In this document: one piece after another, positions 13,864-61,615 of the stretch
Position numbering within the stretch: position 1 is the stretch's first letter
Layout of the letters: each line of letters begins with the position of its first letter
Source of the DNA: Mobula hypostoma
Taxonomy: Eukaryota
DNA length: 64,000 nucleotides
Direction: 5' to 3'
Assembly: GCF_963921235.1 (NCBI RefSeq)
Contig: NC_086102.1
Span: forward strand, 54,374,001-54,438,000
Translations under genes and position numbers: made by a program
The notes under the pieces: model-generated
Told to the model about the DNA's origin: nothing
Seen by the model: the letters and a program-made list of their open reading frames with translations, nothing else
The model's database searches: none

Positions 13864-15129
13864 AAAAATGTAAGATTGCTAATATCCTTACAGAACCAAT
13901 CTGGATTTCTACAAGGCTCATTGAGATGGGAAATGTCACATGTAGAAGTCTCGGCAGAGATGTGCGGAAAGATCCTGAGGCAAAGTGTTTGAAAGTGAAG
14001 TTGCCCTGATTTTGAGAGAGGTTACTACCTGTGTCTATTTGGAAATGTAAATGCTTGCACAACCTTTATGGTCAAAGTCAGGGAAATCCTATTCTCTTAC
14101 CCATTTCTGATCTGATATAATGGAGTTGTGTCTTTTACTGTAGGATTTCCACTAGCATCTCTGGCCACTTAATTTTGAAGGAAATTTTGTTGAAACTACC
14201 TGTAAAACCCTTTAAGTGGTGCACTTTGACTAAAATTGCAGGAGACATGTGTCTGACCATCAAAGTTGCACTGATCTTGAGACTCCAGTATTAATAGAAT
14301 CTGTGTTTTCTGTGACTAAACACAACCTGTTGTGGTTCATATCAATATGGTTAAAAATGACAAGTGAAACAAATTTTGAGCATTCCACTAGGTTTGAGGT
14401 TATTTGGGCAAGCTGGATGCCTAAAAAAAGTGCTGGTTTACAACAAAATCTCACATCGTCTTGTACTCACAGCATGAATTCGCACAGAAATATGCACAAA
14501 GCCAATGTATACACTTGAAAATAATTTCCACCTGCACAAGGTCATTTATTTTTAAATTTCACAGATGAACTTCCATGTCTATATATTCACATTTACAAAC
14601 CTGGCACTTTCCCCATTTTTTCATAGATGTCATCATTCATACTTTTTCTGATTTCATCTGATTGTTCAGCCTTGTTTCTTTTACCTGCTTGGACAACATT
14701 GTACCACCAAATTACTATTTTCAAACAAAATGGACAAAACCATATATACATTTACACAATGAACTTAGATTATAAAGTGCAAAGTACAAATTCTTCTGGA
14801 GGAGATTCAATACCTTGACTGGTGAACAATTATAAGTGATTGTGAGTGTCATGCTTTCACACACTTAGTTACAGAGATGAATTGAGGATCACTGAAAACT
14901 AGTTTCAATTTAACAAGTATTAAAACTATCCTGCAAGTGAAACAGAAGGGCTATAGATTAAAATAGTAATTTTGAATTATATCTCAATTTTAAGAATAGA
15001 ATATTTGTAATCTCTCCAAATGGAAAATCGTGTGTAATGGGAAGCCTGCATAATAAAGAAACAATTGTTTTTTGCCCTCCCACAGGATATAAATAGGCCA
15101 CAATGCTAGCAATTGGCTATGAGTGTACT

Positions 15130-18039: not shown

Positions 18040-18075
18040 AGTCCTGACGAAGGGTCTCGGCCTGAAACGTCGACT
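18040..18075 (+). ncRNA. Minimal type I hammerhead ribozyme motif, intact core
   Basis: Stem I AGUC:GACU, core CUGACGA and GAAA, stem II AGG:CCU, palindromic ACGU stem III, predicted cleavage after GUC at 18071. Confidence 0.7.
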
Positions 18076-18327: not shown

Positions 18328-18582
18328 CAACACACATAGAATGCTGGAAGAACTCAGTGAGCCAGGCAGCACCTGTGGAAAAAAGTACAGTCGACGTTTC
18401 CTGCCAAGACCCTCTGGCTGGACTCATCTTCCACCTATCTCAGTCCTGCCGAAGGTCTTGGCCCAAAATGTTGATTGTTCTTTATTCCATAGATGCTGCC
18501 TGGCCTGCTGAGTTTCTCTAGCATTTTGAGTGTGTTGCTTGGATTTGCAGCATCTACAGATTTTCTCTTGTTTGTGATTTGC
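18328..18582. repeat. Older Penelope-derived fold-back insert interrupting the gag start
   Basis: Diverged inverted arms (about 18328-18425 and 18443-18537) with decayed hammerhead cores; TSD ttac(c/t)cataactaat at 18313-18327 and 18583-18597. Confidence 0.85.
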
Positions 18583-25100: not shown

Positions 25101-25140
25101 CTTTGAAAACTGTATTAATAATGAGTGGTTGATAAACTTT

Positions 25141-25909: not shown

Positions 25910-26460
25910 AATGGGATGTCTCTGTTAGGTGGAGAGATTTGGTAGGCTGGGTTTACTTCACCTGAAATGGGGAATGGGGGGACCTCATCAAAATGTACAA
26001 AATTATGAGGAAATAGATCGGGTAGACAGTGGTAAACCTTGCCACACAACATAGCATTTATAACCAGAGAGCACAGACTTAGGTAAAAACTAACAGGTTT
26101 GTGTGGAATATAAGGAAGAATTTTTTTCTCCCAGAGGGTGATTGGAGCTTGGAATGCAGTGTCTGAGAGGGTGCTAATCTCACAGTATTTAAGAAGTATC
26201 TAGAAGACCACTTAAATCAATGGCTCCCAAACATTTTTGGGTTACCACCCCCTTTTTGCCTATTACATAAAATCTGTAAAGAATTTTGATTTATGATGCA
26301 CAGTGAAAGAAAATAGGATGAACTGCAAATTCAAAGCTGTGGCAAATAATTGCAAAAATTATCAAATCTACTTAAAGCTACAAATAAAATTATTTCTTTA
26401 TTCAATTGCAGTAAAAACTATTTTCAACAATTTTAGAGTGTGCATTAGTAGTCCAACTCG

Positions 26461-30559: not shown

Positions 30560-33433
30560 TGACAACAGCTCAACAAAGAGCAAACATGGAGAATGATTAA
30601 GAGGATGGGAGGAGATAGAAGGGAATGGGAATATCCAGTAATGATATCTGAGGAGGAAACAGCAGTCTCCAGTAGGGATAAGGCTGAGATCATGGCCAAG
30701 TCATTTGTACAGATACACAGTTCAGAAAATTTGTCTGAAGAAGAGGGAAGGAGAAGGGAAAGAACAATGAGTCAGCACCCAGGTGTTTTAAACAGGAGGG
30801 AAGAAACTGATGATATAATTGATGATCCATTTATTTTGGCAGAAATGGTGAGGGCAATAAAGAGATCGAGACCAATCTTCCCAGGGAAAGATCTGATACG
30901 CTATGTTATGCTAAAAAAATCTAGGAGAAGGAGCATTTTTATAACAGAGTGTGGGAAGAGGGAAGATTACCAAGTGCATGGAAAGAAGCAGTAATAATTC
31001 CAATAGGGAAACCTGGCAAGGATCAGTCAAAACCCACTAGCTACAGACCAATATCATTAACATCAAATATATGCAAGATAATGGAAAGGATGATAACTGA
31101 AAGGTTATCGTATGAGCTTGAGAAGAGGGGAATACTGGCAAGTTATCAGAGTGGTTTTAGGAAGGGAAGGAATTCCATGGACTCAGTGAAAACGTTAGAG
31201 ACTGAAATAAGAAAGGCCCAGGCAAATAAAGAGTCAGTAGTTGCAGTGTTTGTTGACATAGAAAAAGCCTATGATATGATGTGGAAGGAAGGATTGTTAA
31301 TTGAACTGCACAAGATGGGGGTTGGTGGGAGAGTATTTAATTGGATAAAAGGTTTTTTGTTTGGTAGAAAGATTCAAGTTCGGATTGGATTAGAATTATC
31401 AAAACAGTACATAGTGGAAAATGGCACACCTCAAGGTAGTGTGATTAGCCTGTTACTTTTCATCATTATGATCAATGATGTCTTCACAAAGGTACCAGTG
31501 GATATAGGTAGGACTCTGTTTGCGGATGATGCGGCCTTGGGGAAAAGAGGCAGAAACATGGAGCATATAATCAGGAAACTACAAGGAGCAATTGATGAAG
31601 TGGTGGAGTGGGGTTATGATTGAGGATGTAGATTTTCAGTAGAAAAAACTCAAGCTGTATTTTTCACCAGGAAAAAATTGATGTTGGGAAGAAGTTAAGG
31701 ATGTATGGGATTGAATTAGAAAGGGTTGAACTTTTAAAATTTCTGGGAGTTATATTTGATTCACGATTAACATGGGCAGACCATATCAGGAAAGTTGAGG
31801 AGAAACGTAAAAAAAGTAATAAATGTGATGAGATGTTTGACTGGTAGGGAATGGGGAGCAAGTTGTTCAGCGTTGAAGAGAATGTATGTGGCTTTAGTGA
31901 GATCTGTGTTGGACTATGGAAATATAGTATATGGATCAGCAGCTAGGTCTCTTACAAGGAAACTGGATGTGATTCAGGCTCTGGCTTTGAGAGTGTGCAA
32001 TGGGGCTTTAAAAACATCACCAGTATCAGCCCGACAGGTAGAAGTGGGAGTAATGCCTTTGGAACTAAGAAGGATGCAATTGATGGCAAACTACTGGGCT
32101 AATTAGCAGGGGCACAATGATTCTCACCCGGCAAAAGGAGTGTTGCAGGAGTGCTGGGAAAATGGGAGGTTTCAGAGGGATAACTTTAGTCGGGTAGGGA
32201 ATGATATTGCTAAAGAATGTGGAGTGTTTGATCTAAGGATAAGTCCTTCAGTAGTTTATCCGGTTGTAGCTCCACGGAAGATTGTATGGCTTGACATAGA
32301 CTGGCATTTGCTAGAGGTAAAAAGGAAAGGAAAATATAAAACTGATTTGGTAAATGCATTTAACTGTCATGTGAGGGAAAAGTATAGTGATTATACTCAG
32401 ATTTATATGGATGGTGCTAAGGAACCTGAAACAGGAGTGACAGGGTTTGGGGTGGCTATACCAGCAAAAGAAATTGGAATCAACAGAAGAACATCTAATA
32501 AGTTAGGGGTGTTTACAGTGGAGATGCTGGCAGTGTTGCTTGCATTGTGATGGGTGGAGAAAGCTAGACAAGTCAAAATGTTGATATGCTCAGATTCATC
32601 CTCAGTTCTAGCAAGTTTAAGGTTTTTACACTCAAACAGTTGGCAAGATGTACTTTATGAAGTCCTTCAGTCAGTCACAAGAATTGCAAATCAGGGAGGT
32701 CAGGTAAAATTTCTATGGGTTCCAGCACATGTGGGGGTGAAGGGGAATGAGAGGGTGGATGAGTTGGCAAAGAGGGCGCTGAAGAAAGAAAATATAGAAA
32801 TGCACATTAGTATCAGTAAAGCAGAGGTTAAGTGTGTAATCTGGGAAAAAAAATCAACCAAATGTGGTAAGGAAGATGGGACAGGGAGGGGAAAGGGAGG
32901 CATTTATATCAAATACAAAAGAGTGTTGCAGGTACTAGGGTAGGTAGTGGAAACAGAAGAGAGGAAACTGTGTGGACTAGGTTAAGGCTGGGGCATTGTG
33001 CATTAAACAAAACATTGAAAATGATAGGGAAACACCAGACAGGACTGTGTGAGGAATGTCAGGAAGAGGAGTCAGTAGAACATGTAGTTCTGAGTTGCAG
33101 GAAGTATGGGATAGAGAGATGATGAGAATTAATCTAAGGGAATTGGGGGTGCAGGAATTCACATTAAAAGGGTGAGAGAGCACAGGTCAGGGTATTTTTA
33201 GCTTTCTTAAGGGATACAGGGTTTTTTTTATAGGATATGATGGATAAGCAGGAATAGGGTACTAGGATGGCCAAAAATGGGAGGATAAGGTATAGGCTAG
33301 GGTATGTGTGGGTGTGTGATTGGGTGAAGGTATTTAGAATGTAAGTCTATTGCACATTCCAGAGCAGAAGGTGGTGGTAATGCACCATTAAGCTGGGTGC
33401 CAACCGCCGTAAAACAAGACAAAGAAGAGAAGA
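30560..33433 (+). mobile_element. I-group (Nimb-like) LINE with RNase H, 5' truncated
   Basis: RT (GTPQGSVIS, LFADD), RNase H (IYMDGAK, ICSDSSS, FLWVPAHVGVKGNERVDELAK), C-terminal CEECQEEESVEHVVLSC, (GAA)n tail. Confidence 0.85.
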
Positions 33434-36090: not shown

Positions 36091-37232
36091 GACTGAATTA
36101 GATATAATCAACATGGCTTTGTTAAGGGCAAGTCAGTGGCTGATGTGATTTATTCTGGCTAGAGTTCTGTGACTAGTGGTGTTCTGCAGGGATCTCTACT
36201 GGGACCTTGGCTAAACATAGATAGGTGGATTAGTAAGTTTGCAGATAATACAAAGATTGATAATGTTGTGAATAACACAGAAGACTGGCAAAGGATACAG
36301 CAGAATATACATCAGTGCAGACATAAACAAAGAAATGGCAGATGGAGTTTAACCCTGACCAATATGAAGCATTACTCCTTGTGAAATCATATGTAAAGAG
36401 ACAGTACTCTATTAATGGCAACACCTTGCAGTACTGATGTACAAAGAGATCTTGTGGTCCAGGTCCATAAATCTCTGAAAATGGTTGCACTGGTTACTTG
36501 CGTGTAAAAATGGCATATGGTATGCTTGTCTTTATTAGTTGAGTAACTGAATTCAACAGTTAGGAAGTTATGTTGCAGATTTATAAAACTCTAGTTAGAC
36601 CATAGCTGAAGCATATCATTCAATTCTGGTTGCCACTTTACAAGAAGGATGTTGAGGCTTTGAAGATGATGCAGGTGAGGTCAGCTAGGATTTTGCAGTA
36701 CTATAAGGAGAGGAGGTTGGGTAGATAGGTCCTTTTCTCTGGAGTGGCAGAGGATAAAGGGAGATCTGTTTAAATTTTATAAGCTTGAGAGGCATAGATA
36801 AAGAGCTGGTATATTTTTCTCAGGGTTGAAATCTTTAATACCAGGGGTCACTCATTTAAGGTGAGAAAGGGTAAATTCAAAGGAGATGGGTGGGGTAAGT
36901 TGTTTTAACAATAGTGTGTACCTGGGATGTATTGTGTGAGGTAATGGTGGTGGTGGTGAAGGCAAATACAATAGCGATGTTCAAGATGCTCTTGGGTAGG
37001 CAGATGAATGTGGAGGAAATAGAAGGATATGGACATTGTGTAGGCAGAGGGGATTTGTTTAGTTAGACATGTTAAACCTTTAAGAGCTTGGAACTTCAGG
37101 GACAATGAGTCTGACTGTGTTTGTGTAGTTTATAAAGGTGTTCCTGAAATGCTATGTTTCTTGAAGTAAATATATTGTTTACATTATATTAGGTTAGTAG
37201 GAGTGCCAAGAATGTACATAATTTAAGCTGTA

Positions 37233-37238
37233 TTTATT
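37233..37238 (-). promoter_or_regulatory. Candidate polyadenylation signal of the Ig-domain gene
   Basis: AATAAA on the minus strand about 200 nt past the proposed stop at 37441-37439. Confidence 0.35.
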
Positions 37239-37438
37239 CAAAGGAAATGGTTTTATCTTTAGCACTGATACTGGTTCACATACCGGTGTTGCCTAAATTT
37301 TCTTTATGACATTTACTTGTTCAGAAATTGATAGAATGAGTTATTTCATACTCTCTGTATGAATCATTCACAGAATTAACTTTTGTATTGCACGCCATCC
37401 TTTGTAGTCCATTCCTGTGTATAGATGTGGGGTCATTG

Positions 37439-37452
37439 CTAGACCTCCACAT
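37439..37452 (-). CDS. Candidate exon 5 (terminal coding part, (Y)VEV*) of the V-set receptor gene
   Basis: Acceptor ttctttacattgctgtgcag|AT GTG GAG GTC TAG; phase-1 compatible. Confidence 0.4.
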
Positions 37453-38156
37453 CTGCACAGCAATGTAAAGAATATCACGTTAAAATAAACGTTGAACGGC
37501 CTTGTGGTTTTTCCGCCCAAAAGATGTCTGTGGTTGAAATCTATGATGTGCTCTATATTTTCCAATATTACACAACAACCAATCGTATTATCAATAAACT
37601 GAAGTGACTATTACTACTAATTCATTACTGATGTACTTGCTAATAATATAAAATTTTGCAGAATCAAAATTAGAAACTTTTGCTTCAGTTTTCAAAGTCA
37701 CTAGTATCTCCAGTTATCTTTAATGGTTATTGGGATATGTTAAAATTTTGCTGGATTCTCAATGAAGTGATATTGGGTAGACACAACCAACAATGACATT
37801 CTCACACATCTACTAAAGTGGAAATGAAAAAAGACAATGCAGGAAACAGTAAGTAGGTCAGGCCGCACTTGGAAAAGAAAAACAGTATTACTATTACAGG
37901 TCAAAGACACTTCATTAAAACCTGAAGAGTTGATTGTTATCATCATTTTTTTACTTTCATTTCTAGCATTAGCATTTATTTGATCCTTGATTTTAAAGAC
38001 AGCACTGTTCAGTCATCCCAATGCAATCACACCTGTCCATCATCAAAATGATTTTGCTAACAGTTAAACAGTTATAACAGTTAAATATAATTTAAACATA
38101 ATTTCTTTCAATCAAATGCATTTATTGTTTTAATGTCACTTCTTCCACCTTATTTA

Positions 38157-38398
38157 CTGTTCTCCTAACATAGGAGGAAAATTTGTGGAAAAGTCCCCGG
38201 GAGATAACATCTCGATGTTTAAAAGAAAAAAATATGCTTCTATTTAGCACTTTTATCATATAATTGTTATTAAGACCCAAAAATTGACACAGAGAAAGCA
38301 GAGAATGCTAAGTAGAAGCATATTTGTTTCTTTTAAACATTGAGATGTTATCTCCTGGGGACTTTTCCAAAAATTTTCCACCCATGTTAGGAGAATAG
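38157..38398. mobile_element. Tc1/mariner-like MITE with 93-bp terminal inverted repeats
   Basis: Arms 38157-38249 and 38306-38398, roughly 90 percent complementary by eye; flanked by TA on both sides. Confidence 0.85.
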
Positions 38399-38461
38399 TA
38401 AAAAAAAAATCTCATGACCCAATTATTCACGTTTAGACCATATCAGGAAACCGCCTTTCAT

Positions 38462-38719
38462 GGCAGCACAGTAGTGTTGAGGTTAGTGTAATGCTATTGC
38501 ACCACCAGCAACGTGGGTTCAATTCCCACCGCTGTCTGTAAGGAGTTCCAACATTCTCCCTGTGACCATGTGGGTTTCCTCTGAGTGCTCCAGTTTCCTC
38601 CCACATTCCAAAGACCTACAGGTTAGAAGGTTAATTGGTCACGTGGGTGTAATTGGGTGGTTTGGCCTGTTGGGCTGGAAGGGCCTGTTTACTGTGCTGT
38701 TTCTCTAAGTAAATAAAAA
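38462..38719 (+). mobile_element. V-SINE (HE1-like) with tRNA head and CR1 tail
   Basis: B box GGTTCAATTCC (38516-38526); V-domain GTGGGTTTCCTCTGAGTGCTCCAGTTTCCTCCCACA; CR1-like tail GGGCCTGTTTACTGTGCTGT. Confidence 0.85.
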
Positions 38720-38897
38720 TCTTCGTTGGTACATCATCAAACTAATTATAACCGACTGCTTGGGAATAAAGTGCAAAGTATGGTCTTAGGGTTAAACTGG
38801 TTATATTAAGGCAGAAATTATATTACTAATTTGCAGATCATTTATTTAACTTAACTCAAAATTTGAACATCAGAGTGTAGTTGTTATTAATTCTTAC

Positions 38898-38939
38898 AAG
38901 ATAATGGAACTGGGCTTTTCTCCTCGACTATTTCATCAT
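38898..38939 (-). CDS. Candidate exon 4 (cytoplasmic, DDEIVEEKSPVPLS) of the V-set receptor gene
   Basis: 42-nt phase 1-1 exon, open in the expected frame, donor T|GTAAGA; acceptor ctaacag has a weak pyrimidine tract. Confidence 0.4.
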
Positions 38940-39039
38940 CTGTTAGATGCACTGCCTTGCCAGTTCACTTCAAGGGTCACTGAAGTAAAACTAAATTCAT
39001 AATATTTGGAAACCGTGTACCAAACTCATATAGTAAACT

Positions 39040-39983
39040 TAGAATAAATTATGTTGAAATTGATAAGGTATCTGAAACAAAATATTTAGGAGTGGTAATA
39101 GATAATAAATTAACCTGGAAACCACATATAAATTATGCCAAAGCAAAAATGTCAGAATCTAATGCAATACTGTACAAAGTGCAAGATTTCTTAAATCAGG
39201 AATCTTTGTACACATTATACTGTTCACTTATAGTCCCATACATGACTTATTGTGTAGAGGTATGGGGAAATACATAAAAAATAAATACAAACTCAATTTT
39301 TCTACTCCAAAAGAAAGTCATATGAGTTGTAAATAAGACAAGTTATTATGAGCCAACCAATCCACTACTTATTCAACTAAACACTTTAAAATTCAGAGAT
39401 TTTGTAGATTTTAAAATAATACAGATTATGTATAAAGTAAAAAATGGACAGCTACCACAATGTATCCAAAGGTTGTTTAAAATGAGAGAAAGTCAACATG
39501 ATTTGAGAGGAACATGTATATTTCAAAAACAAAGGATAAGAACAAATGTAAAAAATCATTGTTTTTCAGTCAGAGGGGTGAATCTATGGAATAATTTTAG
39601 TGAGAATTTAAAAACATGCACCACACTTAAGAAGTTTAAAAAATTATTTTAAAATAATTAAATGAACAAATATAAAATACATGATTTAAAATGAATAGGA
39701 GTAATGTAAATAAATGATACTTGGAATTGGATTTTGTGTTAAAAGATTACGAATATTTTTGTTTTGATGTGATAATTGATGCCAAATATGTTGTTGTATA
39801 AGTAAGAGGGGTAGGCGTAAAAAGCTGTAGCTTCAGCCTACACCCGAAACCTTTCGGTCTGTTTTAAAGAATATCTATGTTTTTTTGTTGTAATTTTGTC
39901 CTGTGAAATCATTGTTGAAAATGATGCTTTTTGTTATATTTGTATTGACTGAAATAAAATTCATTCATCCATTCATTCATTCA
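39040..39983 (+). mobile_element. L2/Crack-type LINE 3' fragment
   Basis: FLGVVIDNKLTWKPHI, LYCSLIVPYMTYCVEVWGNT, GVNLWNNF; AATAAA plus (ATTC)n tail. Confidence 0.75.
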
Positions 39984-40261
39984 AGGGCCAGTTAAGGGCC
40001 TACCCTGGAATTCTTACAGACCGGATATGAATAACAGGATAATTTCAGTGAAGGACATTAGCGAACTTGATGAATGTTTACAGAAATCTACCACTAGAAT
40101 GTGTTTCACTGATATCAATTTTTTTGCATTTCTATTTTATTTTTTAAATTTGGATGTAGTTGATCCTTTATTATCTATGTATTGCTGAATCTCTAGTTTG
40201 TATTTAGTATAGAATCAATCTTTCTCTTAATAACAGAGCAACATAGCTTTTCTTATTTTAC

Positions 40262-40381
40262 CTTGCTTGCTTGACCTTGTCTTACAACACTTCACAACAG
40301 CCCATGCTAAAATGATGATCAGCAGTCCTATTGCCATTCCAGCAAGTATGCCGATGAAAGTACAATTTGCCGAAGTGCGAC
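40262..40381 (-). CDS. Exon 3 (stalk, transmembrane, juxtamembrane) of the V-set receptor gene
   Basis: Acceptor ttatcttctttcgtag, donor G|GTAAAA, 120 nt, phase 1-1; (S)RTSANCT-FIGILAGMAIGLLIIILAWAVV-KCCKTRSSKQ. Confidence 0.8.
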
Positions 40382-40661
40382 CTACGAAAGAAGATAATTG
40401 ATGAAAAATTTTGATTAAAATACATTGTATCAATAAAAAGCTCATTCAAGAGATTAAATACAGCTCTGGCAATCTGACACTCTCAATTTTGGTTGCATTG
40501 GATTGGCAGACTTTCTGGACTATTGGAAGTTAGATCAAAATCAGAAACATTGATGCATGTTGTGAAATTTGTTGTTTGTGGCAGCAGTACCATGCAAGAC
40601 ATTAAAAAGTTACTATAAGTTGCAATAAAAAGTAAAACAAATAACTAGTTCAAAAGGGGAA

Positions 40662-41482
40662 TGTTGTTGTTCGTCCTTCGTAGTCGAAGATGACCATGGC
40701 TTCAAAGTCAAACGGGAGATTGGTGGCTGTGGGTCCGGAGGTGACTGATGAGGCCAATCCGGGCCCTGAAGGCTCGCCCACATGTGGGACACTAGTGGGT
40801 GGGTGCTGTCGTGGCAGTGGATGCTGCTCGGGCCTTGCGCACAGCACGCTTTCATTGCGCCTCGATGATGCGCCTGACTTCAGCTGCACGGGCTCCTGTG
40901 GTGATCTTGCTGCGCCAAGCTGGACGGTCGAGGGCAGGCGTCTCCCACGAGTTGATGTCGACACCCAGGCCTTTGAGGGACGCTTTCAGGCAGTCTTTGT
41001 AACGTTTCTTCTGCCCCCCGACTGAGCGCTTGCCCTGACACAGTTCTCCGTACAGCAGCTGCTTAGGCAATCGGCTGTCTGGCATTCTGACCGCATGTCC
41101 AGCCCAGCTGGCTTGGGCTTTCAGCAGGAGGGTGTAGACGCTGCAGAGCCCAGCTCGTTCCAGGATTTCCGTGTCGGGGACTTTGTCCTGCCACCTGATG
41201 TGGAGGAGTCTGCGGAGACAGCTCAAGTGAAAATGGATGAGCTGTTTGGCGTGTCTGCTGTAGACAGTCCAGGTCTCGCTGGCGTAAAGGAGGGTGATAA
41301 GGACCGTAGACCTTCAGCTTGGTGGTAAGGCTGAGTCCTCCCCGCTCCCAGACGTTCTCACGGAGTCTCCCAAAGGCGGTGCTGGCTTTGGCAATCCTGT
41401 TGTTGACTTCAGCGTCTATGTTCACTGCGCGAGAGAGTATGCTGCCCAGGTAGGTGAAAAAGGGGAATAACTTTGTGTTCAT
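40662..41482 (-). mobile_element. RTE/BovB-clade LINE 3' fragment
   Basis: FTYLGSILSR...RIAKASTAFGRL; WAGHAVRMPDSRLPKQLLYGEL...GGQKKRYKD; (CAA)n tail. Confidence 0.9.
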
Positions 41483-41829
41483 GAGTTTGTGGACTGTTCA
41501 GAGACCTGATTGACATTCCCATTAACACCCCAATATACTTTATTCACATTGTTTAGCTGTTACATGGTAGTATAATACATTTTCCAGTGAATTTTTGAGT
41601 TTCTAGGGAGCATGGGAAACTGAGTGGTAGTTCAATGGGAGCACAGGAGATAGGATACTGGTAGATTTAAAGGAATCATGGGAAATGGGTCCCTGGGTAA
41701 ATTTAAAGGAAGTGTGTGAAACAGCAGGTTATTGGAGTTCTACTCTAACACAATAGCATGGAGCATTGCACAGGTGTGGTAGAATACCCACAATATCTCT
41801 CCAAATTCCTCTCCCAGTTGAAGATGAAG

Positions 41830-44800
41830 AGAGATTTTACAGAGCTAGGTAGAAAGCAGGACCTCCTGGGTAGTAATCTCTGAATTGCTGCCTGTGTCAT
41901 GCACCAGTGAGGGTAATAATAGGACGATTTGGCAGATGAATGTGTGGCTGAGGTAATAGTGCAGAGGCAGAGGTTCAGGTTTCTGGGTCATTGGGAAGGT
42001 ATAAGCTGTCAAAAGGGATGGGTTACACCTGAACCTGAGGGGGATTAATGTCCTTTCAGGAGGATTTAAACTAATTTGACAGGGGATAGGAACCAGGGTA
42101 ATAGGGCTGAGGATGGGGTGGTTGGTTTACTAACAGAGGCGGTATGTAGTGAGACTGCTCGGTAGGACAGGTTGATGATAGGGCAAAATTGCAATAGATG
42201 GGATGAGTTGCAATGTAAAAGTGTGACAAAATCAAAAAGGGTGTTGAATACAGGACTGAAGGTGTTATATTTGAATGCATGCTATATACAGAATAAGGTA
42301 GATGAACTTCCAGCACAGTTATAGATTGAAGTGTATGACATTGTGGGCATTACTGAATTGTGGCTGAAAGAAGATTATAGCTGGGAGCTTAAAGTCCAAG
42401 GATACACAATGTACTGAAAGGATAGACAGGTAGGCAGAGGGGGTGGTGTGGCTCAGATGATTAAAAAAATAGAAATCAAATCGTTAGAAAGAAGTGACAT
42501 AGGATCAGAAAGTGTAGAATCATTGTGAGTAGAGTTAAGAATCTGCAAAGGTAAACAGAACCTGATGGAAGTTATACACAGACAACCAAACAGTAGCAAA
42601 TATGTGGTCTACAAGTTACAATGGGAGATAGAAAATGCATGTCAAAAGAGCAATGTTACAATAGTCATGGGGGATTTCAATATGCAGGTAAATTGAAGAT
42701 ATCAGGTCGATGCTGGATCCTAAGAGGGGTGACTTGTTGAATGCCTACAAGGCGGCTTTTCAGAGCAGCTCATGGTTCATCCCACTTGGGGACCAGCTGT
42801 TCTGGATTGGGCATTGTGCTATGAACCAGAATTCATTAGCGTGCTTAAGGTAAAGGAACCCTTAGGAGACAGTGATCATAATATGATAGAATTCACCCTG
42901 CAATTTAAGAAGGAGAAGCTAAAGTCAGATGTATCAGAATTAAAGTGGAGTAAAGGGAATTACAAAGGCATGTGAGAGGAGCTGGCCAAAATTGATTGGA
43001 AGGGAACACTAACAGGGATGATGGCAGAGCAGCAATGGCTGGAATTTCTGGGAGCAATTCAAAAGGCACAAGATGGATACATCCCAAAGAAAGAAGTATT
43101 CTGTAGGCACAATGACGCATCCATGGCCGACAAGAGAAGTCAAAGCTATCATAAAAGCCAAAGAGAGAGCATGACATAGAGCAAAAATTAGTCAGAAGTT
43201 TGAGGATTGGGAAACTATTAAAAACAACAGAAGGCAACTAAGAAAGTCATAAAGAAGGTAAAGATGAAATACAATGGCAAGCTAGCCAACAAAATTAAGG
43301 GGAAAACCAAAGGCTTCTTCAGATACAGTACATAAAGTGTAAAAGAGAGGTGAGAGTAGTTATCAACTTCTGAAAAATTATGCTGGAGAGGTAGTAAAGG
43401 AGGAGAAGGAAATTAAAGATAAACTGAATAAGTATTTTGCATCAGTCTTCTCTTTTGAAGACACAAGCAGTATGCTGGAAGTGCGAGAGTGTCAGGGGAG
43501 GCAGAGATGAGTGAAGTTGCCATTACTAGGAAGAAGGTGCTTGGGAAACTGGAAGTTCTGAAATTTGGTAAGTCTTTTGGACCAGATGGTCTACATCCCA
43601 GGGTTCAGAAGACGAGGCTAAAGAGATCATGAAGGCATTAGTAATAATCTTTCAAGAATCTCTAAATTCTGGCATGGTTCCAGAGGACTGGAAAATTACA
43701 ATTGTCATTCCACTCTTCAAGGAGGGAGAGAGGCAGAAGAAAGGAAATTATAGGCCAGTTAGTCTGATCTCAGTGGCTGGAAAGTTATTGGAGTCTATTG
43801 TTAAGGATGTGGTTTCAGGGTATATGAAAGCACATGCTAAAATAGGCTGAAGTCAGCATGGTTTCCTAAGAGAAAATATTGCCGGAAAGATCTATCTGAA
43901 TTCTTTGAAGAAATGACAAGCAGGATAGACAAAGGATGTTGTGGACCTGGATTTTCAGAAGCCCTTTGACAAAATGTAACACAAGAGGCTGCTTAACAAG
44001 TTAAAAAGCTATGGCATTATAGGAAAGATACTAGCATGAACAGAACATTGGCTGATGGGCAGGAGGCAAAGTTTGAGAATAAAGGGAACCTTTTCTGGAT
44101 GGCTGATAGTGACTAGAGGTATTCCACAGTGGTCCGTGTTGGGACCACTTCTTTTCACATTATATGTCCATGGTTTGGGTGATGGAATTGATGGCTTGGT
44201 GGCCAAGTTTGTGGACAATAGAAAGATAGGTGGAGGGACAGTTAGAATTGAGGAAGCAGAGAGACTACAGAAGGACTTAGATTAGGAGAATGGGCAAAGA
44301 AGTGGCAGATGGAGTGTACTGCCGTGCACTTTGGCATCTGAGGTGCAAAGGGACTTGGGAGTCTTCACGCAAGATTCCCTAAAGATTAGGAAGATCAAAC
44401 ATGCAGATTGAGTCAGTGGTGAGGAAGGCATATGGAATGTTAGCATTCACTTTAAGAGGACTAGAATATAAAAGTGAGGATGTAATGTTGAGGTTTTATA
44501 AAGGACTGATGAGGCTTGACTTGGAGTATTGTGAGCAGTTTTGGGCCCATTATCTAAGAAAAGATGTGCTGACATTGGAGAGGGTTTAAAGAAAGTTCAC
44601 AAAATGATTCTGGGCTTATCATATGAGGAGTGCTTGATGGCTCTGGGCCTTTACTCAGTAGAGTTCTGTAGAATGAGTGAGGATCTCGTTGAAACCTATC
44701 ATTCTTACCTTTGGTCCCATTGTTCTTGAGATGGTGGCTTAGGTTGAACTTTGCTTCTGTGCTCCATTCTTTATCTTCTGTCTTCATTCCCCCAAAACCA

Positions 44801-45980
44801 ACACCTCCTTTGAGAAGTTAATGAGAAACATGGATAGGCATCATATTATTCATGTAGATTTTCAGGAATTGCATTTTAAGGTGAGTGTGTGAAAATTCAA
44901 AGGAGGTGTGCTCATCGTCACATTCTTCAGTGAGCAGCCGGACGTTGTGGTCCACTTCAATACCAATGACATAGGTAGGAAGGGTGATGAGGTCCTGTAA
45001 AGTGATTTCAGGGAGTTATGTGCTGAGTGAAATGGTAGGACTTCAAGAGTTGTGATCTCAGGATTGCTATCCATGCCGTGTGCTAGGGAGGTCAGAAATA
45101 GGATGATCACTGGAGATGATGCAGGAGGGAGGGCTTCAGATTTTTGGATCATCGGGCACTCTTCCAGGGAAGGTGGGAAAAATGGTAGATGGAATTTAAA
45201 TTAGACAAGTGTGAAGTAATTTGGGAAGAAAAACCAGGGTAGGACCAGGGTACCACAGTAGGTGGTAGGGCACTGAGGAGTGCGGTAGAACAAAGGGGTC
45301 TGGGAATACTGATCCATAATTCTTTGAAAATAGGGTAGGTAGGGTCATAAAGAAATTTCTTGGCATGTTGACTTTCATAAATCAGATTGCTGAGTACAGG
45401 AGATGGGATGTTATGTTGAAGTTGTATAAGACATTGGTGAGGCCCAGTTTGGAGTATTGTGTGCAGTATTGGTCACCTACCTACAGGAAAGATTGAAAGA
45501 GTGCAGAGAAAATTTAGAAAGCTGTTGCCAGGACTTGAGGACCTCAGTTATAAGGAAAGGTTGAATAGGTTAGAACTTTATTCCCTAGGGTGTAAAAGAA
45601 TGAGAAGAGATTTGATACAGATATGCAAAATTTTGAGGGGTATAGATAGGGTAACTGAAAGCAGATTGGGTGTGCTTGGGTGCAGCTGGGTGAGACTAGA
45701 ATTTGAGGTAATGGGTTAAAGGTGAAAGGTGAAATGTTTAAAGAGAACATGAGGGGGAGCTCCTACACTCAGAGGGTAGTGACAGTGTGGAATAAGCTGC
45801 CAGTGGAATTGGTGGACGTGAGTTTGATTTCAACATTTAAGAGTAATTTGGATAGGTACTTGGATGGGAGAGGTATCGAGGGCAATGATCTAGGCTGATA
45901 TGACTCAGCAAAGTAATAGTTCGGCATGGACTAGATATGCCAAAGAGTCTATTTCTGTGCTGGAGTGCTCTATGAATCTA
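41830..45980 (+). mobile_element. Long decayed CR1 (ORF1 end plus ORF2) followed by a second CR1 remnant
   Basis: DGLHLN esterase end at about 42020; EN ITELWL; EDWKITIVIPLFK; KFVDN; second esterase piece VVVHFNTNDIG at about 44945. Confidence 0.8.
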
Positions 45981-47984
45981 TGTGCAGGGAAGTTTATCGT
46001 TATCCAGAGTGGCGGGTTGCTGGAAAATGCTGCCCAGAGTGATGGTAGAGGCAGAGAAAAGAGGGACATGGATCATGAGCAGAAAAGATTAGTTTAATTC
46101 AGTAACTTTAGCTTAATTAGTTTAGCGCAACATTGTGTGAAAGCCCTTTTTCTGTGTTCTAATTAGGATGTGGTCGTATGTTGAGCATGATTAGTTATTA
46201 TCCCGCATCTTTGCTACCTGCTCCAGAACAGTGGAGAAACTCTGCATGACGGGGTGGGGAACACTAATGAGAAAACTTGCAAAGCCCTGCAAGATATGGT
46301 TAGGAAGATGAGTCAGGTTTGGAGCTTGGTGTGACTCATCGCTGGGCTACACTACCTGTTTCCCAGGGACTAATCCTATCAGATGTGACAGTTGATGTAC
46401 ACAGGCCAACCGCGAAGGAAGTCATTCAAGCAGGCCAGGCATGTTTTGGGTTATACTTACTGTTATTTGGAATTTCATAAAAGAGAAGTACAAGGTATGT
46501 TTTACCCATGGATCAGCACTTTTTATTATTCATGTTGCGACACAGAAGTACTGACTGCACTGGTCAGTGCAAGTGACGTGCTACTCTGCAGTAGCATCCA
46601 GTGCTGAGTCAGGGGAGCTCCAGGTCAGCCTGAAAATAGGGATCATATCTGACACAAACCCTTTCAGTTGTAGTGCTGGGCCTGGAATGCACCTGAACAT
46701 TACTGTATGCTGGAACAAATCTAAAGTAAAATACTATGAGTGTCACCTCGGCCAATTAATTCCACTGAGACCCCCCAAGAAATAGTCGGCAAAAAACAAC
46801 TTGAAAAGGAAATACAGATGAAATGCAAGCTAAGGTGTGTTGAGGAAAGATTATTTAAAATAATGATTTCAGAATGGAATAATTATTGAGACTTATAGAC
46901 GAATCAATGTGCACAAGCTTGATGTTCAAAAGCATAGGGTAATGTATAGAAGGCATGCTCTAACTATTGATGTCGCTGCTCCCAGGAGGGTCTACTTTTA
47001 ACCTGCATGAGTACAGAAGAAATAAAATGAATATTCTATGTGACATCAGGAGTTTCCTCTGCTGCTCCTTAAAATCATGGCAGATCACATATATCATCCC
47101 ATGTTCTGCCCACTTCCCATCTTGCCTGATTCTATTACCGTCCAGAAATTCTTCAGTCTCAAGTTTTAACTAGATATATGTTCTGGGCTTCCACAGCCTT
47201 TGAAGAGGGTATTGCAAAGATTTATAATTTCTCATACCCAAATTGCTAACCTCTTATCACAGCATAGATATGTACAGCACAGAAATAGCCCTCTGGTTTT
47301 CATGTCAATGCTGATATTTTTCCATGTCAACACATTTGCCCACAATAGGCTTGAATCTTTTGATGCCTTGCATATTTAATTACCTGCCTAAATATCACTT
47401 AAATGTAGTGATTATATCTGATTCCACCACTTTCCCTGGCAGCACCTTCCAAATCTGCATGCTGTAACAAAAAAGACGCCCTTCTCAAATCCCCTTTAAC
47501 ACCCCTTCCCCTCACCTGAAAGCTATGTCCTCTTGTTATTGTCTACTACTGTGGGGAAGATAACTTAACTATCTATCCTATCCATGTCTCTTGTAAATGT
47601 ATTCCTTTATCAGATCATCTCCACAGCATCATTTCTGCAAGAAAAATGGGTCCAGTCTATCAAATAGTTCCACATAACTAAAGTCCTCTTGACCTAGGCA
47701 GCTTCCTAGTGAATTTCTTTCATGCTCTCTCCATAGCAACCACATCCTTCTTATACTGTAGCAACCAGAACTGCACATGGTGCTGCAGTGCAGTCTAACA
47801 GCGTTTAGTCAAGTTGCACAAATTCTGAGACTATGCTCCTTAGTTCTAGACTTTCTGGTCCAAGGAAACAGCCTCTCAGAAGTTATCCTTATCCTGCCCC
47901 CAGGTCAATGAGGACACCTTTCATTTTTCTAAACTCCAGGACAGCGGTCCTTCCTACTCACCGTGTCCTTGTTGGGCAAACCAT

Positions 47985-48600
47985 AAATACAAGAGATTCT
48001 GCAGATGCCAAAAATCTTAAGCAACACACAAAAATGTTGGTTGAACCCAGGAAGTCAGGCAGCAGATATGACAGAATGAATAGTCAGCGTTTCAAGATGC
48101 GAAAGGAAATGAGCATGCACCAGAATAAGAAGGTGGGGGAGATGAAGGATTATGGGCTGTCAGGTGATAGGTGAGACCAGGTGAGGGGAAAAGTGGGTGC
48201 GTGGTTGAGAAGGGTGAGAAGCTGCAAGGTGATTGGTGGAAGAGGTAATGGGCTAAAGAGGAAGGAATTTAATAGGAGAGAACAGTGGACCATCGAAGAG
48301 GGAGATCAGATGTTGTGATGGGCAGGTAGGACGGGAGAAGAGGAGAAAGGGTAACTAAATGGGGAATCAGAATGAGGAAAGGGAAGGAGAGAAGTGGGGA
48401 GGGTGGAGAAATTACAGGAAATTAGAGAAATCAATGTTCATGCCCTCAGTTTGGAGGCTACCCAGGCAGAATATGAGGTGTTGTCCCTCTTACCTGAGAG
48501 TGGCTTCATTGTGGCAGCAGAGAAGGCCATGGACAGACATGATTGATCAGAAGTGGGAAGTCCAATTGAATGGGCAGCCAATGAGAGATCCTGTCTCTTC
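47985..48600 (-). mobile_element. Old Penelope-like element 3' fragment
   Basis: Homologous to 62775-63348 (GIY-YIG C-terminus at about 48430-48580 plus 3'UTR). Confidence 0.7.
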
Positions 48601-49260
48601 CACTTATCCCCTCCCAACTTCTTAATTCATTCCCCCTCCCCCCAGCCACCTATCTTCCCCTCATCTATCACCTGACATCTTGTACTCCTTCCCCTTATTG
48701 AAGAAACCGTTCATCCCAGTGAGCAATCTAGCTTTATTTTGATTCCAAAGCAGGTATATCCTCTTTTATCAATGGAGACCTAAACTCCCAGCAAAACAGA
48801 TGCAGCTTCTACAATTGTAGCAAGGCTTTTGCAATTTTATATTCAATTTCCCTTGCAACAAATACCAGCTTACCATGTGCCTTCTGCACAGCAGGGACTC
48901 TCTCTGCTGCTCATGTGCCATCATGTCCAGATCCCTTTATGCACCAACACCTGCTAATTTCTCACTGGTCAAAACATTGCTTGTCTATTTTTCACGCTGA
49001 AGTGAACAACTTCACATTGTTTATTTAGCTGTCACCTTCTTGCCTCTTTGCTTAAGTGTCGGTACCTTTGAATACTTCTTACAACTGTCCCCCACACCCC
49101 CCCCCAGCAAATCAAAGCGTTACAACACAGGTAATCTGACATTTCAAATGTGCAGCTCTGATGTCAGATTCAACTAGTTTTCTTGATTTTGTGTGCTCCC
49201 CAATACCCCTTCAGTTTGTCACTAATCTTTACCACCACCTTTAACCTAGCGCCACTATCA

Positions 49261-51610
49261 TAAGACCAAGACCATAAGACAAAGGAGCAGAAGTTGGCCA
49301 TTCGGCCCATCGAGTCTGCTCCACCATTTTATCATGAACTGATCTATTCTCCCATTTAGTCCCACTTCCCCACCTTCTCACCATCACCTTTGATGCCCTG
49401 GCTACTCAGATACCTATCAATCTCTGCCTTAAATACACCCAATGACCTGGCCTCCACTGCCGCCCGTGGCAAAAAATTCCATAGATTCACCACCCTCTGG
49501 CTAAAAAAATTTCTTCGCATTTCTGTTCTGAATGGGCGCCCTTCATTCCTTAAGTCATGCCCTCTCGTACTAGACTCTCCCATCATGGTAAACAATTTTG
49601 CCACATCCACTCTGTCCATGCCTTTCAACATTCAAAATGTTTCGATGAGGCCTCCCCTCATTCTTCTAAACTCCAAGGAATACAGTCCAAGAGCGGACAA
49701 ACGTTCCTCATATGTTAACCCTCTCATTCCCGGAATCATTCTCGTGAATCTTCTCTGTATCCTCTCCAGTGTTAGCACATCTTTTCTTAAATCCTTCAAA
49801 AAACAGAGTCCATCTCTGCAATCATGCTGCTGCTGTTAGTGGAACCGTTAGTGGCTAAAGGGATCAGCGGGTATGGAGGGAAGGCTGGTACAGGGTTCTG
49901 AGATGGATTATCAACCATGATCATACTGAATGGCGGTGCAGGCTTGAAGGGCTGAATGGCCTACTCCTGCACCTATTTTCTATGTTTCTATGTTTCTATA
50001 AGGAGACCAAAACTGCCCACAATACTCCAAGTGAGGTCTCACCAGCGCCTTATAGAGCCTCAACATTACATCCCTGCTCCTATACTCTATTCCTCTAGAA
50101 ATGAATGCCAAGTTTGCATTCACCTTCTTCACCACAGACTCAACCTGGAGGTTAACCTTAAGGGTATCCTGTATGAGGACTCCCAAGTCCCGTTGCATCT
50201 CAGAACTTTGAATTCTCTCCTCATTTAAAAAATAGTCTGCCCGTTTATTTCTTCTGCCAAAGTGCATAACCATACACTTTCTAACATTGTATTTCATTTG
50301 CCACTTCTTTGCCCATTCTTCCAATGTATCCAATTCTCTCTGCAGACTCTCTGTTTCCTCAGCACTACCGGTCCCTCCACCTATCTTTGTATCATCAGCA
50401 AACTTAGCCACAAAGCCATCTATTCCGTAATCCAAATCGTTGATGTACAATGTAAAAAGAAGTGGCCCCAACACAGACCCCTGTGGACCACCACTGGTAA
50501 CCAGCAGGCAACCAGAATAGGATCCCTTTATTCCCACTCTCTGTTTCCTTCCAATCAGCCAACGCTCTTTCCACGTATGTAATTTCCCCATAATTCTATG
50601 GGCTCTTATCTTGTTAAGTAGCCTCATGTGTGGCACCTTGTCAAAGGTTTTCTCTGAAAATCCAAATATACAATATCCACTGCATCTCCCTTGTCTAGCC
50701 TACTTGTAATTTCCTCAAAAAATTGTAATAGGTTTGTCTGGCAGGATTTTCCTTTAAGGAATCCATGCTGAGTTCTGCCTCTCTTGTCATGTGCCTCCAG
50801 GTACTCTGTAACCTCATCCTTGACCAATCGACTCCAACAACTTCCCAACCACCGATGTCAAGCTAACAGGTCTATAATTTCCTTTTTGCTTCCTTGCCCC
50901 CTTCTTAAATAGCGGAGTGACATTTGCAATCTTCCAGTCCTCCAGAACCATGCCAGAATCTATTGACTTTTGAAAGATCATTGCTAATGGCTCTGCAATC
51001 TCCACAGCTACTTCCTTCAGAACACGAGTGTGCATTCCATCTGGTTCGGGAGATTTATCTACCCTTAGACTATTCAGCTTCCTGAGTAGTTTCTCTGTTG
51101 TAATTGTGACTGTGCACACTTCCCTTCCCTGCCACCCTTGAGTGTCCAGTATACTGCTGATGTCTTCCTCAGTGAAGATTGATGCAACATACTCGTTCAG
51201 TTCCCCTGCCATCTCCTTATGTCCCATTACAATTTCTCCAGCATCATTTTCTATCGGTCCTATACCTACTCTCACCTGTCTTTTACTCTTTATATACTTG
51301 AAAAAGCTTTTAGTATCCTCTTTGATATTATTTGCTAGCTTCCTTTCATAGTTAATCTTTTCCCTCTTAATGACCTTCTTAGTTTCCTTCTGTAAGCTTT
51401 TAAAAACTTCCCAATTCTCTGTCTTCCCACTAATTTTTGCTTCCTTGTATGCCTTCTCCTTTGCTTTAACTTTGGCTTTGACTTCTCTTGTCAGCCACGG
51501 TTGTATTCTTTTTCCATTCGAAAATTTCTTCTTTTTTGGAATATACCTGTCTTGCACCTTCCTCACTTCTCGCATAAACTCCAGCCACTGCTGCTCTGCG
51601 TCCTTCCCGC
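49261..51610 (-). mobile_element. Young 5'-truncated CR1 with frameshifts; plus-strand CR1 tail nested at about 49793-49997
   Basis: ORFs 50814..51575, 50624..50848, 49980..50636 (PQGSVLGPLLF, FADD) and 49356..49631; (TCTTATGG)-type tail at 49261. Confidence 0.9.
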
Positions 51611-51939
51611 CAGTTCATCGTTCCGCTTTTCCTAGCTTCCACCTTAACACAGATTGCTCTATCCTTTGTACTGTCCTCCCCACCTCCCTCCCCATCTGTT
51701 CTCTGGACCCTAATACTTGTGTATTATTCCCTTCTCCAATGAATGGCCACCAATCTGAAACATTAAACTGCGTTTCTACCTCCACAAATACTAATTGACT
51801 AGCTGGGCATTTCCAGCGTCATCTGCTTTAGTATTTTGTTTTTCCCCCAATAGCTTTATTTTATTAAAATAATGAAATTTATGTTTATTAATCATCTAAA
51901 GAGTCTAACAGCACACATCGACTGTCAGGACAAACTCAC

Positions 51940-52284
51940 TGAACACGTTCACTTCGGTCTTCTGGGTGAACTCTTCTCCATTCTGACCCGTGACAGTGCA
52001 GTCATATGTCCCAGAATCGTTTATCTGCATATTTCTGAGGGAGAGTGAGCCGTTCGGGTACAAAAAAGCCCGGTGTGAATAGTTGAAGAGATAAGTACTC
52101 GAACTGCCTGCATCTGATATCAACTTGCCGACGTGGCGCCAAGTTATCCCATTGAAATACTTCCATTCCACTGTCTGTATCTGTTCAGAAATGCCAGTGA
52201 CTGGTACTGGCAGGAATATACTCCCAGTGACTGTTCCATTTAAAACGTTAGAGCTCGTTTCGATGACTGCCACTTGCATTACAA
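51940..52284 (-). CDS. Exon 2: Ig V-set domain (CEACAM/CD2-SLAM/HEPACAM-like N-domain)
   Basis: Acceptor tttatttacag, donor A|GTGAGT, 345 nt, phase 1-1; GTVTGSIFLP, VEW, RAFLYPNGSLSLRNMQINDSGTYDC. Confidence 0.9.
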
Positions 52285-52384
52285 CTGTAAATAAACGGGC
52301 ACAGGATTAAAAAAAACTGGTTAATATCCCAACCGAGTATGGAAAAAAAAGACAACGGTGACCAGTGTATCGGCCATGGGTTAC

Positions 52385-52439
52385 CTTGTAGCCAACAACT
52401 GCAGAACGTCATCATCGTGGACTTTCCGGACCACTCCAT
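52385..52439 (-). CDS. Exon 1 (signal-peptide leader MEWSGKSTMMTFCSCWLQ)
   Basis: Strong Kozak ACGATGG, donor AAG|GTAACC, 55 nt phase 1; joins exon 2 in frame (WLQ-VVMQVAVI). Confidence 0.75.
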
Positions 52440-60610: not shown

Positions 60611-60868
60611 ACTGAGCCGTTGTGGTGATAGGAAAATTGCAGCAGTTCCAAGTCCGTGCTTAAGCAGGAGTTGACTTTGGCCATGACCAACCTTTCAAAG
60701 CACTTCACAGTAGATGTGAGCGCCACTGAGTGATAGTCATTGAGGCAGCTCACCCTACTCTTCTTGGACACTGGTTTGATTGTTGCCCTTTTGCAGCAGA
60801 TGGACACCTTCAACTGCAGCAGTGAGAGACTGAAGGTGTCAGTGAGTGATGACATTTGCATCATCAAT
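60611..60868 (-). mobile_element. Rex1/Babar LINE, 5' part
   Basis: ATIKPVSKKSRVSCLNDYHSVALTSTVKCFERLVM...LLQFSYHHN continues as DAI at 58149. Confidence 0.8.
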
Positions 60869-60870
60869 AG

Positions 60871-61615
60871 CAGGGGTCCCCAACCAATTTTGCACCGCGG
60901 ACCGGTTTAATATTGACAATATTCTTGCGAACCGGCCGACCCGGGGGGGGTGTGTTCAAGTAGGGTTAAATTCACCTCAACATGTCTTTTACAGTTAGGG
61001 TTGCCAACTTTCTCACTCCCAAATAAGGGACAAAAGTAGCACTCAAATCGTGGGACACTTTATCCGGGGAAAAGACTACCATGACCATGAAGCCTTGCGC
61101 GGGCACCTGTGAGCGCATGCGTGACGCGCGTATGCGCGTACGTGCCGATTTTTTTCCCCACAAATCGGTTTTCTCTTCATCTTCTCGACTATACTCTGCA
61201 TACATTATTTCTACTTTATATATAGGCTGTGTATTTATCATATCATTCCTGCTTTTACTATATGTTAGTGTTATTTTAGGTTTTATGTGTTATGTGGTAT
61301 GATTTGGTAGGTTATTTTTTGGGTCTGGACCAACGCTCGAAAATTGTTCCCATATGAATTAATGGTAATTGCTTCTTCATTTTACGCCATTTCGGCACGA
61401 AAGGTTTCATAGGAACGCTCTACCTTAGCGGGGGAAATACGGGACAAGGGCGGTCCCGTATGGGATAAACCAATTTAGCCCAATATACGGGATGTCCCAG
61501 CAAATACGGGACAGTTGGCAACCCTATGTTCAAGTTCAACAGTGTGTGACAGAGAATGAGGAAAGGTGCAGCTGACTCATATCGTTTCCTCACGGCCCGG
61601 TAGCACATGCTTTGC
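60871..61615. mobile_element. Composite hAT-type MITE (outer CAGGGGTCCCCAAC element plus inner TAGGGTT element)
   Basis: Inner element 60961-61526 flanked by 8-bp TSD TGTTCAAG; outer right TIR missing. Confidence 0.75.

Follow-up and report, generated by a model that had tools for sequence, protein, structure and literature searches.

A retroelement-rich locus of Mobula hypostoma holds an intact five-exon gene for a predicted single-V-domain receptor of an unnamed family of cartilaginous fishes

What do a few short immunoglobulin-like exons encode when they lie scattered among transposons in the genome of a devil ray, and do they form a gene at all? The question is raised by a 64 kb stretch of contig NC_086102.1 of Mobula hypostoma (assembly GCF_963921235.1, positions 54,374,001 to 54,438,000; the whole stretch is called the window below and contains no N runs). 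A first-pass annotation of its sequence had joined three exons on the minus strand into a leader, a V-set immunoglobulin (Ig) domain, a stalk of eight residues and a transmembrane (TM) helix. We found that these exons are part of a real and intact gene, LOC134348715, which is annotated but uncharacterised. The gene extends from 52439 to 14593 of the window on the minus strand, that is over about 38 kb and not the 15 kb first supposed, and its five exons join into an uninterrupted frame of 236 amino acids in which every splice site is canonical. We consider it reasonably probable that the product is a type I glycoprotein with one V domain, a member of an unnamed family, and that its cytoplasmic tail would signal through a YxxM motif and an SH2 protein. 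The parts of the gene, in window positions, are the following.

52385..52439, minus strand: exon 1, start codon and signal peptide (55 nt, ends in phase 1)
51940..52284, minus strand: exon 2, V-set Ig domain (345 nt, phase 1-1)
44709..44807, minus strand: exon 3, stalk (99 nt, 33 codons, phase 1-1; two sequons, NLS and NGT)
40262..40381, minus strand: exon 4, juxtamembrane Asn-Cys, TM helix and basic, Cys-rich membrane-proximal stretch (120 nt, phase 1-1)
14593..14684, minus strand: exon 5, cytoplasmic tail and stop codon, 25.6 kb past the TM exon; tail C-terminus DDIYEKMGKVPGL
14545..14550, minus strand: AATAAA polyadenylation signal from a pattern search, 43 nt after the exon 5 stop codon

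The three exons of the first-pass annotation (52439-52385, 52284-51940, and 40381-40262) were borne out. They have AG/GT sites, are all in phase 1 and give an open frame of 173 codons which encodes the leader, the V-set domain, a hydrophobic span of 22 residues and the basic KCCKTR, and all five of the sequons that had been listed (NGT, NYS, NGS, NDS, and NCT) are present. Exon 1 opens with the ATG at 52439 and closes with the donor CAAG/GTAACC after 52385; it equals residues 1-18 of the public Mobula protein and shows 67% identity to Pristis by tblastn. Exon 2 is bordered by the acceptor TTTACAG/TTG and the donor TTCA/GTGAGT, and its translation shares 72% identity with a Pristis pectinata protein (E 2e-46). 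Exon 3 was found by tblastn with Pristis residues 136-169 (E 3e-5) between an AAAG acceptor and a GTAAGA donor, and is included in the public Mobula protein. Exon 4 (acceptor TCGTAG/GTC, donor CAAG/GTAAAA) matches Pristis with E 9e-10, and exon 5, which has a CAG acceptor in the matching phase 1, matches Pristis residues 205-231 with 78% identity (E 4e-8), both by tblastn. Callorhinchus and Rhinoraja show the same layout of five exons, all in phase 1, the exon lengths in Rhinoraja being 55/333/81/126/89. A long last intron is also common to them: it measures 25.6 kb in Mobula, whereas Rhinoraja has one of 13 kb and Callorhinchus one of 4.4 kb. Exons, phases and open frame are thus matters of direct observation.

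Because the public M. hypostoma LOC134348715 protein (217 aa) equals the window letter for letter over its first 208 residues, the gene is already annotated, though unnamed; it carries a LOC number only, and the decision of the first-pass annotation to assign no gene symbol stands. In the literature searched no paper was found that names these loci, six LOC and XP identifiers of the family having been looked for. For the pair Mobula and Rhinoraja, the ratio of nonsynonymous to synonymous substitution rates (dN/dS) comes to 0.37 overall; the V domain taken alone gives 0.26, and the membrane and tail part about 0.5. The gene is therefore under purifying selection, at the relaxed level typical of surface receptors. 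The surroundings could suggest something else, namely a decaying pseudogene or chance exon-like pieces, as the locus consists mostly of retroelement debris. The introns hold open reading frames (ORFs) of reverse transcriptase (RT) at 49983-50699, 30925-31620, and 21293-21544 and of RNase H at 32551-32940, and because they are full of such remains the earlier description of a gene hidden among transposons is fair. A pseudogene is nevertheless extremely improbable in view of the open frame of 236 codons, the canonical splice sites, the dN/dS of 0.37 and the orthologues in 12 species.

How far does the family reach? The exon 2 translation was searched with HMMER, exhaustively, against 1.84 billion representative proteins. 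Short proteins of 166-232 aa, all from cartilaginous fishes, aligned over the whole domain (residues 20-133), and giant multi-Ig proteins were also returned, which matched via a generic E-F strand motif. Together with further homologue searches, this gave orthologues in 12 chondrichthyan species, on one contig each: five rays and skates (Pristis, Hemitrygon, Mobula, Rhinoraja, and Narcine), six sharks (Heterodontus, Cetorhinus, Carcharodon, Mustelus, Scyliorhinus, and Chiloscyllium) and the chimaera Callorhinchus. One locus is thus recovered per species from the chimaera to the sharks and rays. The orthologues are all 166-249 aa long with one V domain each, and their automatic names are inconsistent (“AGER-like,” “PSG22-like,” “VSTM5-like,” and “uncharacterized”). 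The gene had been proposed to be lineage-specific, which is correct if the lineage is taken to be all Chondrichthyes and incorrect for any narrower group, because chimaera, sharks and rays all have it. Word-index searches with Pristis, family profile and Callorhinchus queries returned chondrichthyans only and no close relative outside Chondrichthyes, but their limited sensitivity makes them weak evidence of absence elsewhere.

The single V domain is a constant feature of this family. A six-frame scan of the 64 kb for Ig F-strand signatures turned up no Ig exon besides exon 2, and neither the window nor any orthologue has a C2 or other Ig exon. The exon 2 translation matches the Pfam V-set family (PF07686) with E 6e-8 and 33.2 bits against a cut-off of 26, and 10 of 10 family members match as well. 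The set of V-frame residues comprises a Trp in strand C, an Arg/Asp pair and DxGxYxC in strand F, and W59, R90, D108, G110, Y112, and C114 are invariant. The F-strand cysteine, C114, is therefore among the residues kept throughout the family, whereas the B-strand cysteine is absent in all 10 aligned members, which have an invariant Leu43 instead (strands of the GSIFLPV type). The F-G region reads YDCTVTGQNGEEF. Of the conserved sequons, NGT falls in the A' strand, NGS in the E strand, NDS in the E-F turn and NL[S/T] in the stalk. In most members Asn-Cys stands just where the chain enters the membrane from outside, and the TM helix contains no charged residue and is followed by Cys and basic residues. 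In the AlphaFold 2 model, the V domain is predicted with confidence, at block-mean predicted local distance difference test (pLDDT) values of 74-89, the stalk is disordered and a long helix occupies residues 173-212. The 236-aa protein accordingly reads as signal peptide, V domain, glycosylated stalk of 33 residues, membrane-edge Cys, TM helix and a tail of about 30 residues.

What lies beyond the V domain had been modelled differently in the first-pass annotation. There the V exon was joined directly to the TM exon and followed by two small exons on the same strand, giving a product of 191 aa.

38898..38939, minus strand: tentative exon 4 of the first-pass annotation, unsupported
37439..37452, minus strand: tentative exon 5 of the first-pass annotation, which would complete LSYVEV, unsupported

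LSYVEV would be an ITIM-like hexamer (an ITIM being an inhibitory motif of the immunoreceptor tyrosine-based class), and the protein an inhibitory receptor. Every junction proposed has AG/GT sites and keeps the frame; skipping the phase 1-1 stalk exon also keeps it, and in the annotated Scyliorhinus isoform X2, which is stalk-less, exon 3 is indeed skipped. However, the stalk of eight residues arises only by skipping the 99-nt exon at 44807-44709, which the Mobula model itself carries together with nearly all orthologues (Callorhinchus and Rhinoraja have the equivalent exon). The ITIM tail is absent from the proteins of all 12 species, and the homologue-supported tail contains no ITIM of the form (S/I/V/L)xYxx(I/V/L). 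No family member gives a tblastn match to the tentative exons, and tentative exon 4 has no match in the Callorhinchus or Rhinoraja loci; in the skate Rhinoraja the intron aligns at tentative exon 5, but the acceptor is CAC, not CAG, and the coding letters differ. The sense frames of intron 4 hold 68 ITIM-like hexamers by chance (the initial 3 kb alone contain 12), and because they are so many it is unsurprising to meet one beside usable splice sites. We regard this model as very unlikely; it would have tagged the gene as inhibitory on the basis of chance exons, and the ITIM reading should be replaced by one that centers on a putative YxxM site. The direct join of V exon and TM exon may exist as a minor form, which the Scyliorhinus isoform would mirror.

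The tail encoded by exon 5 has a single conserved feature, the C-terminal D(D/E)D(I/V/T)YE(K/S/N)MG(K/R)VP, which is directly observed in nine of nine full-length orthologues aligned, with the chimaera and the devil ray as the extremes of the range. Its Tyr is invariant and its Asp, Met, Gly, Val, and Pro are nearly so. The window and eight of these nine orthologues carry YE(K/S/N)M, Hemitrygon having YVKM, and Scyliorhinus and Chiloscyllium read YENM. On both strands of the whole window the pattern [DE]xYExMG has a single instance, at 14631.

This tail is missing from the public Mobula protein, which departs from the five-exon model only past residue 208, where its ending is translated intron.

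40227..40261, minus strand: read-through of the exon 4 donor in the public Mobula model, nine codons and then a stop, giving a 217-aa tail-less form

Because the read-through ends the model after the TM exon, its span is 12,213 bp (52439-40227). One could hence imagine that in Mobula the working product is a tail-less adhesion or decoy molecule of 217 aa and that the tail exon is an unspliced relic. The NCBI model ends in just this way, two AATAAA/ATTAAA signals lie about 90-120 nt past the read-through point, the intron before the tail exon, packed with retroelements, has expanded to 25.6 kb, and Pristis also has an annotated tail-less isoform. An unused exon would, however, be expected to decay, and this one is intact in acceptor, phase, motif and stop codon, with an AATAAA close by and 78% protein identity with Pristis; long last introns that are spliced are moreover the rule in the family, as in Rhinoraja (13 kb) and Callorhinchus (4.4 kb). 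We therefore judge a relic tail unlikely, and continue with the five-exon model: the public annotation probably needs correction or a second isoform, as it omits a conserved tail exon. Tail-less products, from read-through in Mobula and from alternative splicing in Pristis, may be real minor isoforms, and so may the stalk-less Scyliorhinus X2.

Several shortened variants recur across species in the public models. The tail-less Pristis X3 (217 aa) uses an acceptor upstream of the tail exon, and the Cetorhinus model (166 aa) stops after the stalk and is possibly secreted. Pristis isoform X1, in which the genuine tail exon is translated out of frame, and Narcine isoform X2 have extra C-terminal segments that match dispersed repeats or reverse-transcriptase-like ORFs with many copies in the window. 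These segments are transposon exonisations or annotation artefacts, and being repeat-derived they are therefore uninformative on the real tail of this gene.

To which known receptors is the family akin? The first-pass annotation had placed the V domain near the N-domains of CD2, CEACAM and HEPACAM, and Pfam, hhalign and Foldseek all group it with CD2/SLAM, CEACAM, and HEPACAM N-domains. By these comparisons it would belong to the adhesion-type V group that lacks the disulfide, and they do not choose a family within that group. Whole-domain hhalign comparison gave E 1.5e-8 for a stingray Ly9/SLAM-like protein, E 3.4e-9 with 32% identity for a shark CEACAM/PSG22-like protein, and E 1.4e-6 for a HEPACAM-like one. 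With Pfam Receptor_2B4 (PF11465) each of the 10 members gives a match at an E value of 1 or lower, the best at 8.5e-6; the window protein scores 18.9 bits as a whole and 20.6 with exon 2 alone against a cut-off of 21, and Rhinoraja and Carcharodon have precomputed hits. In Foldseek searches of PDB, CD84 comes top with CD166, JAML, nectin, CD48, CD2, and TIGIT close behind, while matches over the whole architecture are led by VSTM5 and continue with CD8 beta, SLAMF6, SCN4B, CD7, and CEACAM4. Across PDB, AFDB Swiss-Prot and AFDB clusters, many V domains, including those of RAGE and TIGIT, have similar scores; the fold searches indicate the kind of domain and not orthology. Sequence and profile searches against solved structures gave generic E-F-strand matches (contactin, Robo, and DSCAM) with CEACAM, CD4, and JAML lower, and do not discriminate families.

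Likeness to the CD2/SLAM proteins (CD84, NTB-A, 2B4, CD48, and Ly9) consists in an N-terminal V domain without the canonical B-F disulfide and in a type I membrane protein with a tyrosine motif in the tail. On the other hand, the membrane-proximal C2 domain is missing here (one Ig exon in the window, single-V orthologues), the F-strand Cys is kept, and the sole tail tyrosine stands in YxxM and not in TxYxxV/I, the immunoreceptor tyrosine-based switch motif (ITSM). Membership of the SLAM family in the defining sense is ruled out because there is neither C2 domain nor ITSM.

With CEACAM proteins, of which CEACAM3, 4, and 19 are the one-domain cases to compare, the family shares the E-F signature YPNGSL...N..ND(S/T)G.Y; CEACAM N-domains are among the PDB sequence matches, and CEACAM4 is a whole-architecture match in Foldseek. 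CEACAM N-domains are devoid of both canonical cysteines and keep an R-D salt bridge; in the present family R90 and D108 are invariant, but so is the F-strand Cys, and there is no ITIM or immunoreceptor tyrosine-based activation motif (ITAM). The similarity to the shark CEACAM-like protein is no better than that to the SLAM-like one, and CEACAM membership does not seem to be supported. CEACAM3, 4, and 19 and VSTM5 share the one-domain layout, and the first-pass remark that a one-domain member is unusual was in this respect overstated.

VSTM5 deserves separate treatment, as the gene could be its counterpart or close paralogue, with a structural role as in neuron protrusions and T-cell microvilli and no tyrosine signalling. 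The common layout is a leader, one glycosylated V domain, a short stalk, a TM helix and a short tail in about 200 aa. In AFDB Swiss-Prot, Foldseek puts mouse, human and rat VSTM5 in the first three places (E about 4e-10); an ESM Atlas search, by features and by structure, ranks VSTM5 clusters high, and their V domains also hit Receptor_2B4; and NCBI calls the Heterodontus orthologue “VSTM5-like.” Both are heavily N-glycosylated one-domain proteins (PMC5528877). Identity, however, is only 16-18%, and the root-mean-square deviation is above 25 A, so that the match rests on the common layout of V domain plus helix; CD8 beta, SCN4B, and CD7 match almost equally well. VSTM5 is not among the names looked up for 15 of the 150 HMMER matches listed, nor in the word-index searches. 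The neighbouring gene in Callorhinchus is CD200/nectin-like, which presumably does not match the human VSTM5 neighbourhood. Taken together, a VSTM5 counterpart is in our view doubtful, and an unnamed family of its own is the reading that we keep.

In the tail the resemblance points elsewhere. Like CD28, ICOS, CD28H, and CD28X of the CD28 family, and like CD7, which is a Foldseek match, the protein has a V domain, a stalk, a TM helix and a short YxxM-type tail, as well as a membrane-edge cysteine and thus a possible dimer. CD28H has YEDM and CD28X has EYEDM, very like the YE(K/S/N)M observed here (PMC11599192). Unlike theirs, the V domain here is without the canonical disulfide, and no family member has a proline motif of the kind that marks the CD28-type complementarity-determining region 3 (CDR3) loop (PPP and EIP, with GxG as a further hallmark; PMC11599192). 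Membership of the CD28 family is ruled out because the canonical disulfide and the PPP/EIP/GxG loop are both missing. Four orthologue accessions and two LOC identifiers were looked for in the supplementary files of the same study, and none was present (PMC11599192). The YxxM likeness bears on possible function and not on descent.

What, then, might the receptor do? We propose that the protein would stand on the cell surface, where its V domain may engage a partner, homophilic or heterophilic, as its relatives do. The single conserved tail tyrosine would be phosphorylated and recruit an SH2 protein. In the CD28 family, YxxM is a site for the SH2 domain of the p85 subunit of phosphoinositide 3-kinase (PI3K) and YxNx a site for Grb2/GADS (PMC11599192). 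Because the motif is a YxxM, p85 would be the most likely partner, and Grb2 could also fit in the two sharks with YENM, Scyliorhinus and Chiloscyllium. The output would be an activating or co-stimulatory signal and not an inhibitory one. A covalent dimer could form through the membrane-edge cysteine, and palmitoylation could occur at the cytoplasmic ones. Several points weigh against this proposal. A tyrosine motif of four residues does not prove PI3K binding and marks a putative site; the public Mobula model is without the tail exon and ends by donor read-through, and the YxxM form is predicted in Mobula solely from the intact and conserved exon 5. VSTM5, the best structural match over the whole architecture, is described as a neuronal protein that shapes membrane protrusions and not as a signalling receptor, and the study in question describes no signalling by tyrosine motifs (PMC5528877).

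A bolder version of the proposal would see an unnamed co-signalling receptor that predates the split of chimaeras and sharks, in which a disulfide-less domain of SLAM/CEACAM type is combined with a PI3K-recruiting YExM tail like that of CD28H and CD28X, alternative 3' ends switch between signalling and tail-less forms, and bony vertebrates have no recognisable counterpart. We offer this tentatively, as a possibility that is less probable than its simpler parent. If true, it would be a costimulatory-type module of cartilaginous fishes.

Receptors that combine one V domain with a tyrosine motif are very common, and here the design is found in an unnamed family that spans the Chondrichthyes. For the general picture nothing changes; one more unnamed receptor joins the growing list from shark and ray genomes. 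The immediate gain is practical: a corrected gene model, where the public protein is cut off past the membrane anchor and is without the sole conserved signalling motif. A small protein with one locus recovered per species, conserved across the depth of Chondrichthyes, is also a tractable case, and the family could serve to ask in what way adhesion-type V domains were joined to PI3K-type tails in early jawed vertebrates.

The genomic neighbourhood, which the first-pass annotation had suggested for comparison among chondrichthyans, was informative in one species. Among the five examined, Callorhinchus milii has a neighbour within 10 kb, and Mobula, Chiloscyllium, Rhinoraja, and Carcharodon have none. 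The Callorhinchus neighbour, a V+C2 gene of 412 aa (locus positions 17781-25927, minus strand), stands tail-to-tail with the orthologue. It is longer than mammalian CD200, and the matches of its V exon to nectin-3 (E 4e-14) and to CD200 (E 1.4e-13) are about equally good. The window contains no counterpart of this neighbour, only transposon matches. Such an arrangement fits the known clustering of nectin/CD200/SLAM-type genes and does not fix orthology. Human CD200 lies tail-to-tail with BTLA. A relationship to BTLA was considered and dropped as unsupported; the Ig domain of BTLA has canonical disulfides and its tail ITIM/ITSM motifs.

Within intron 4, one stretch is shared with the same intron of Rhinoraja.

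37333..38068, minus strand: collinear intronic block, aligning with the same Rhinoraja intron (locus positions 20128-20941) at 64-74% identity

The block is single-copy in the window and in the Rhinoraja locus, and a comparison with Rfam gave nothing. It may have a regulatory role or simply be slowly evolving intron, the latter because its identity resembles that of the exons and flanks. A core of about 100 bp (about 37340-37440) reaches near 88% identity between devil ray and skate. The same intron contains a SINE-like element (short interspersed nuclear element) with a tRNA-like end at 38450-38720 on the minus strand, of which a stretch of about 110 bp matches seven places in the Rhinoraja locus. 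Upstream of the gene, 58381-60906 on the minus strand holds two long adjoining ORFs of 365 and 476 aa, the second with a full RVT_1 domain (E 1e-37); no other retroelement of the window is so little decayed.

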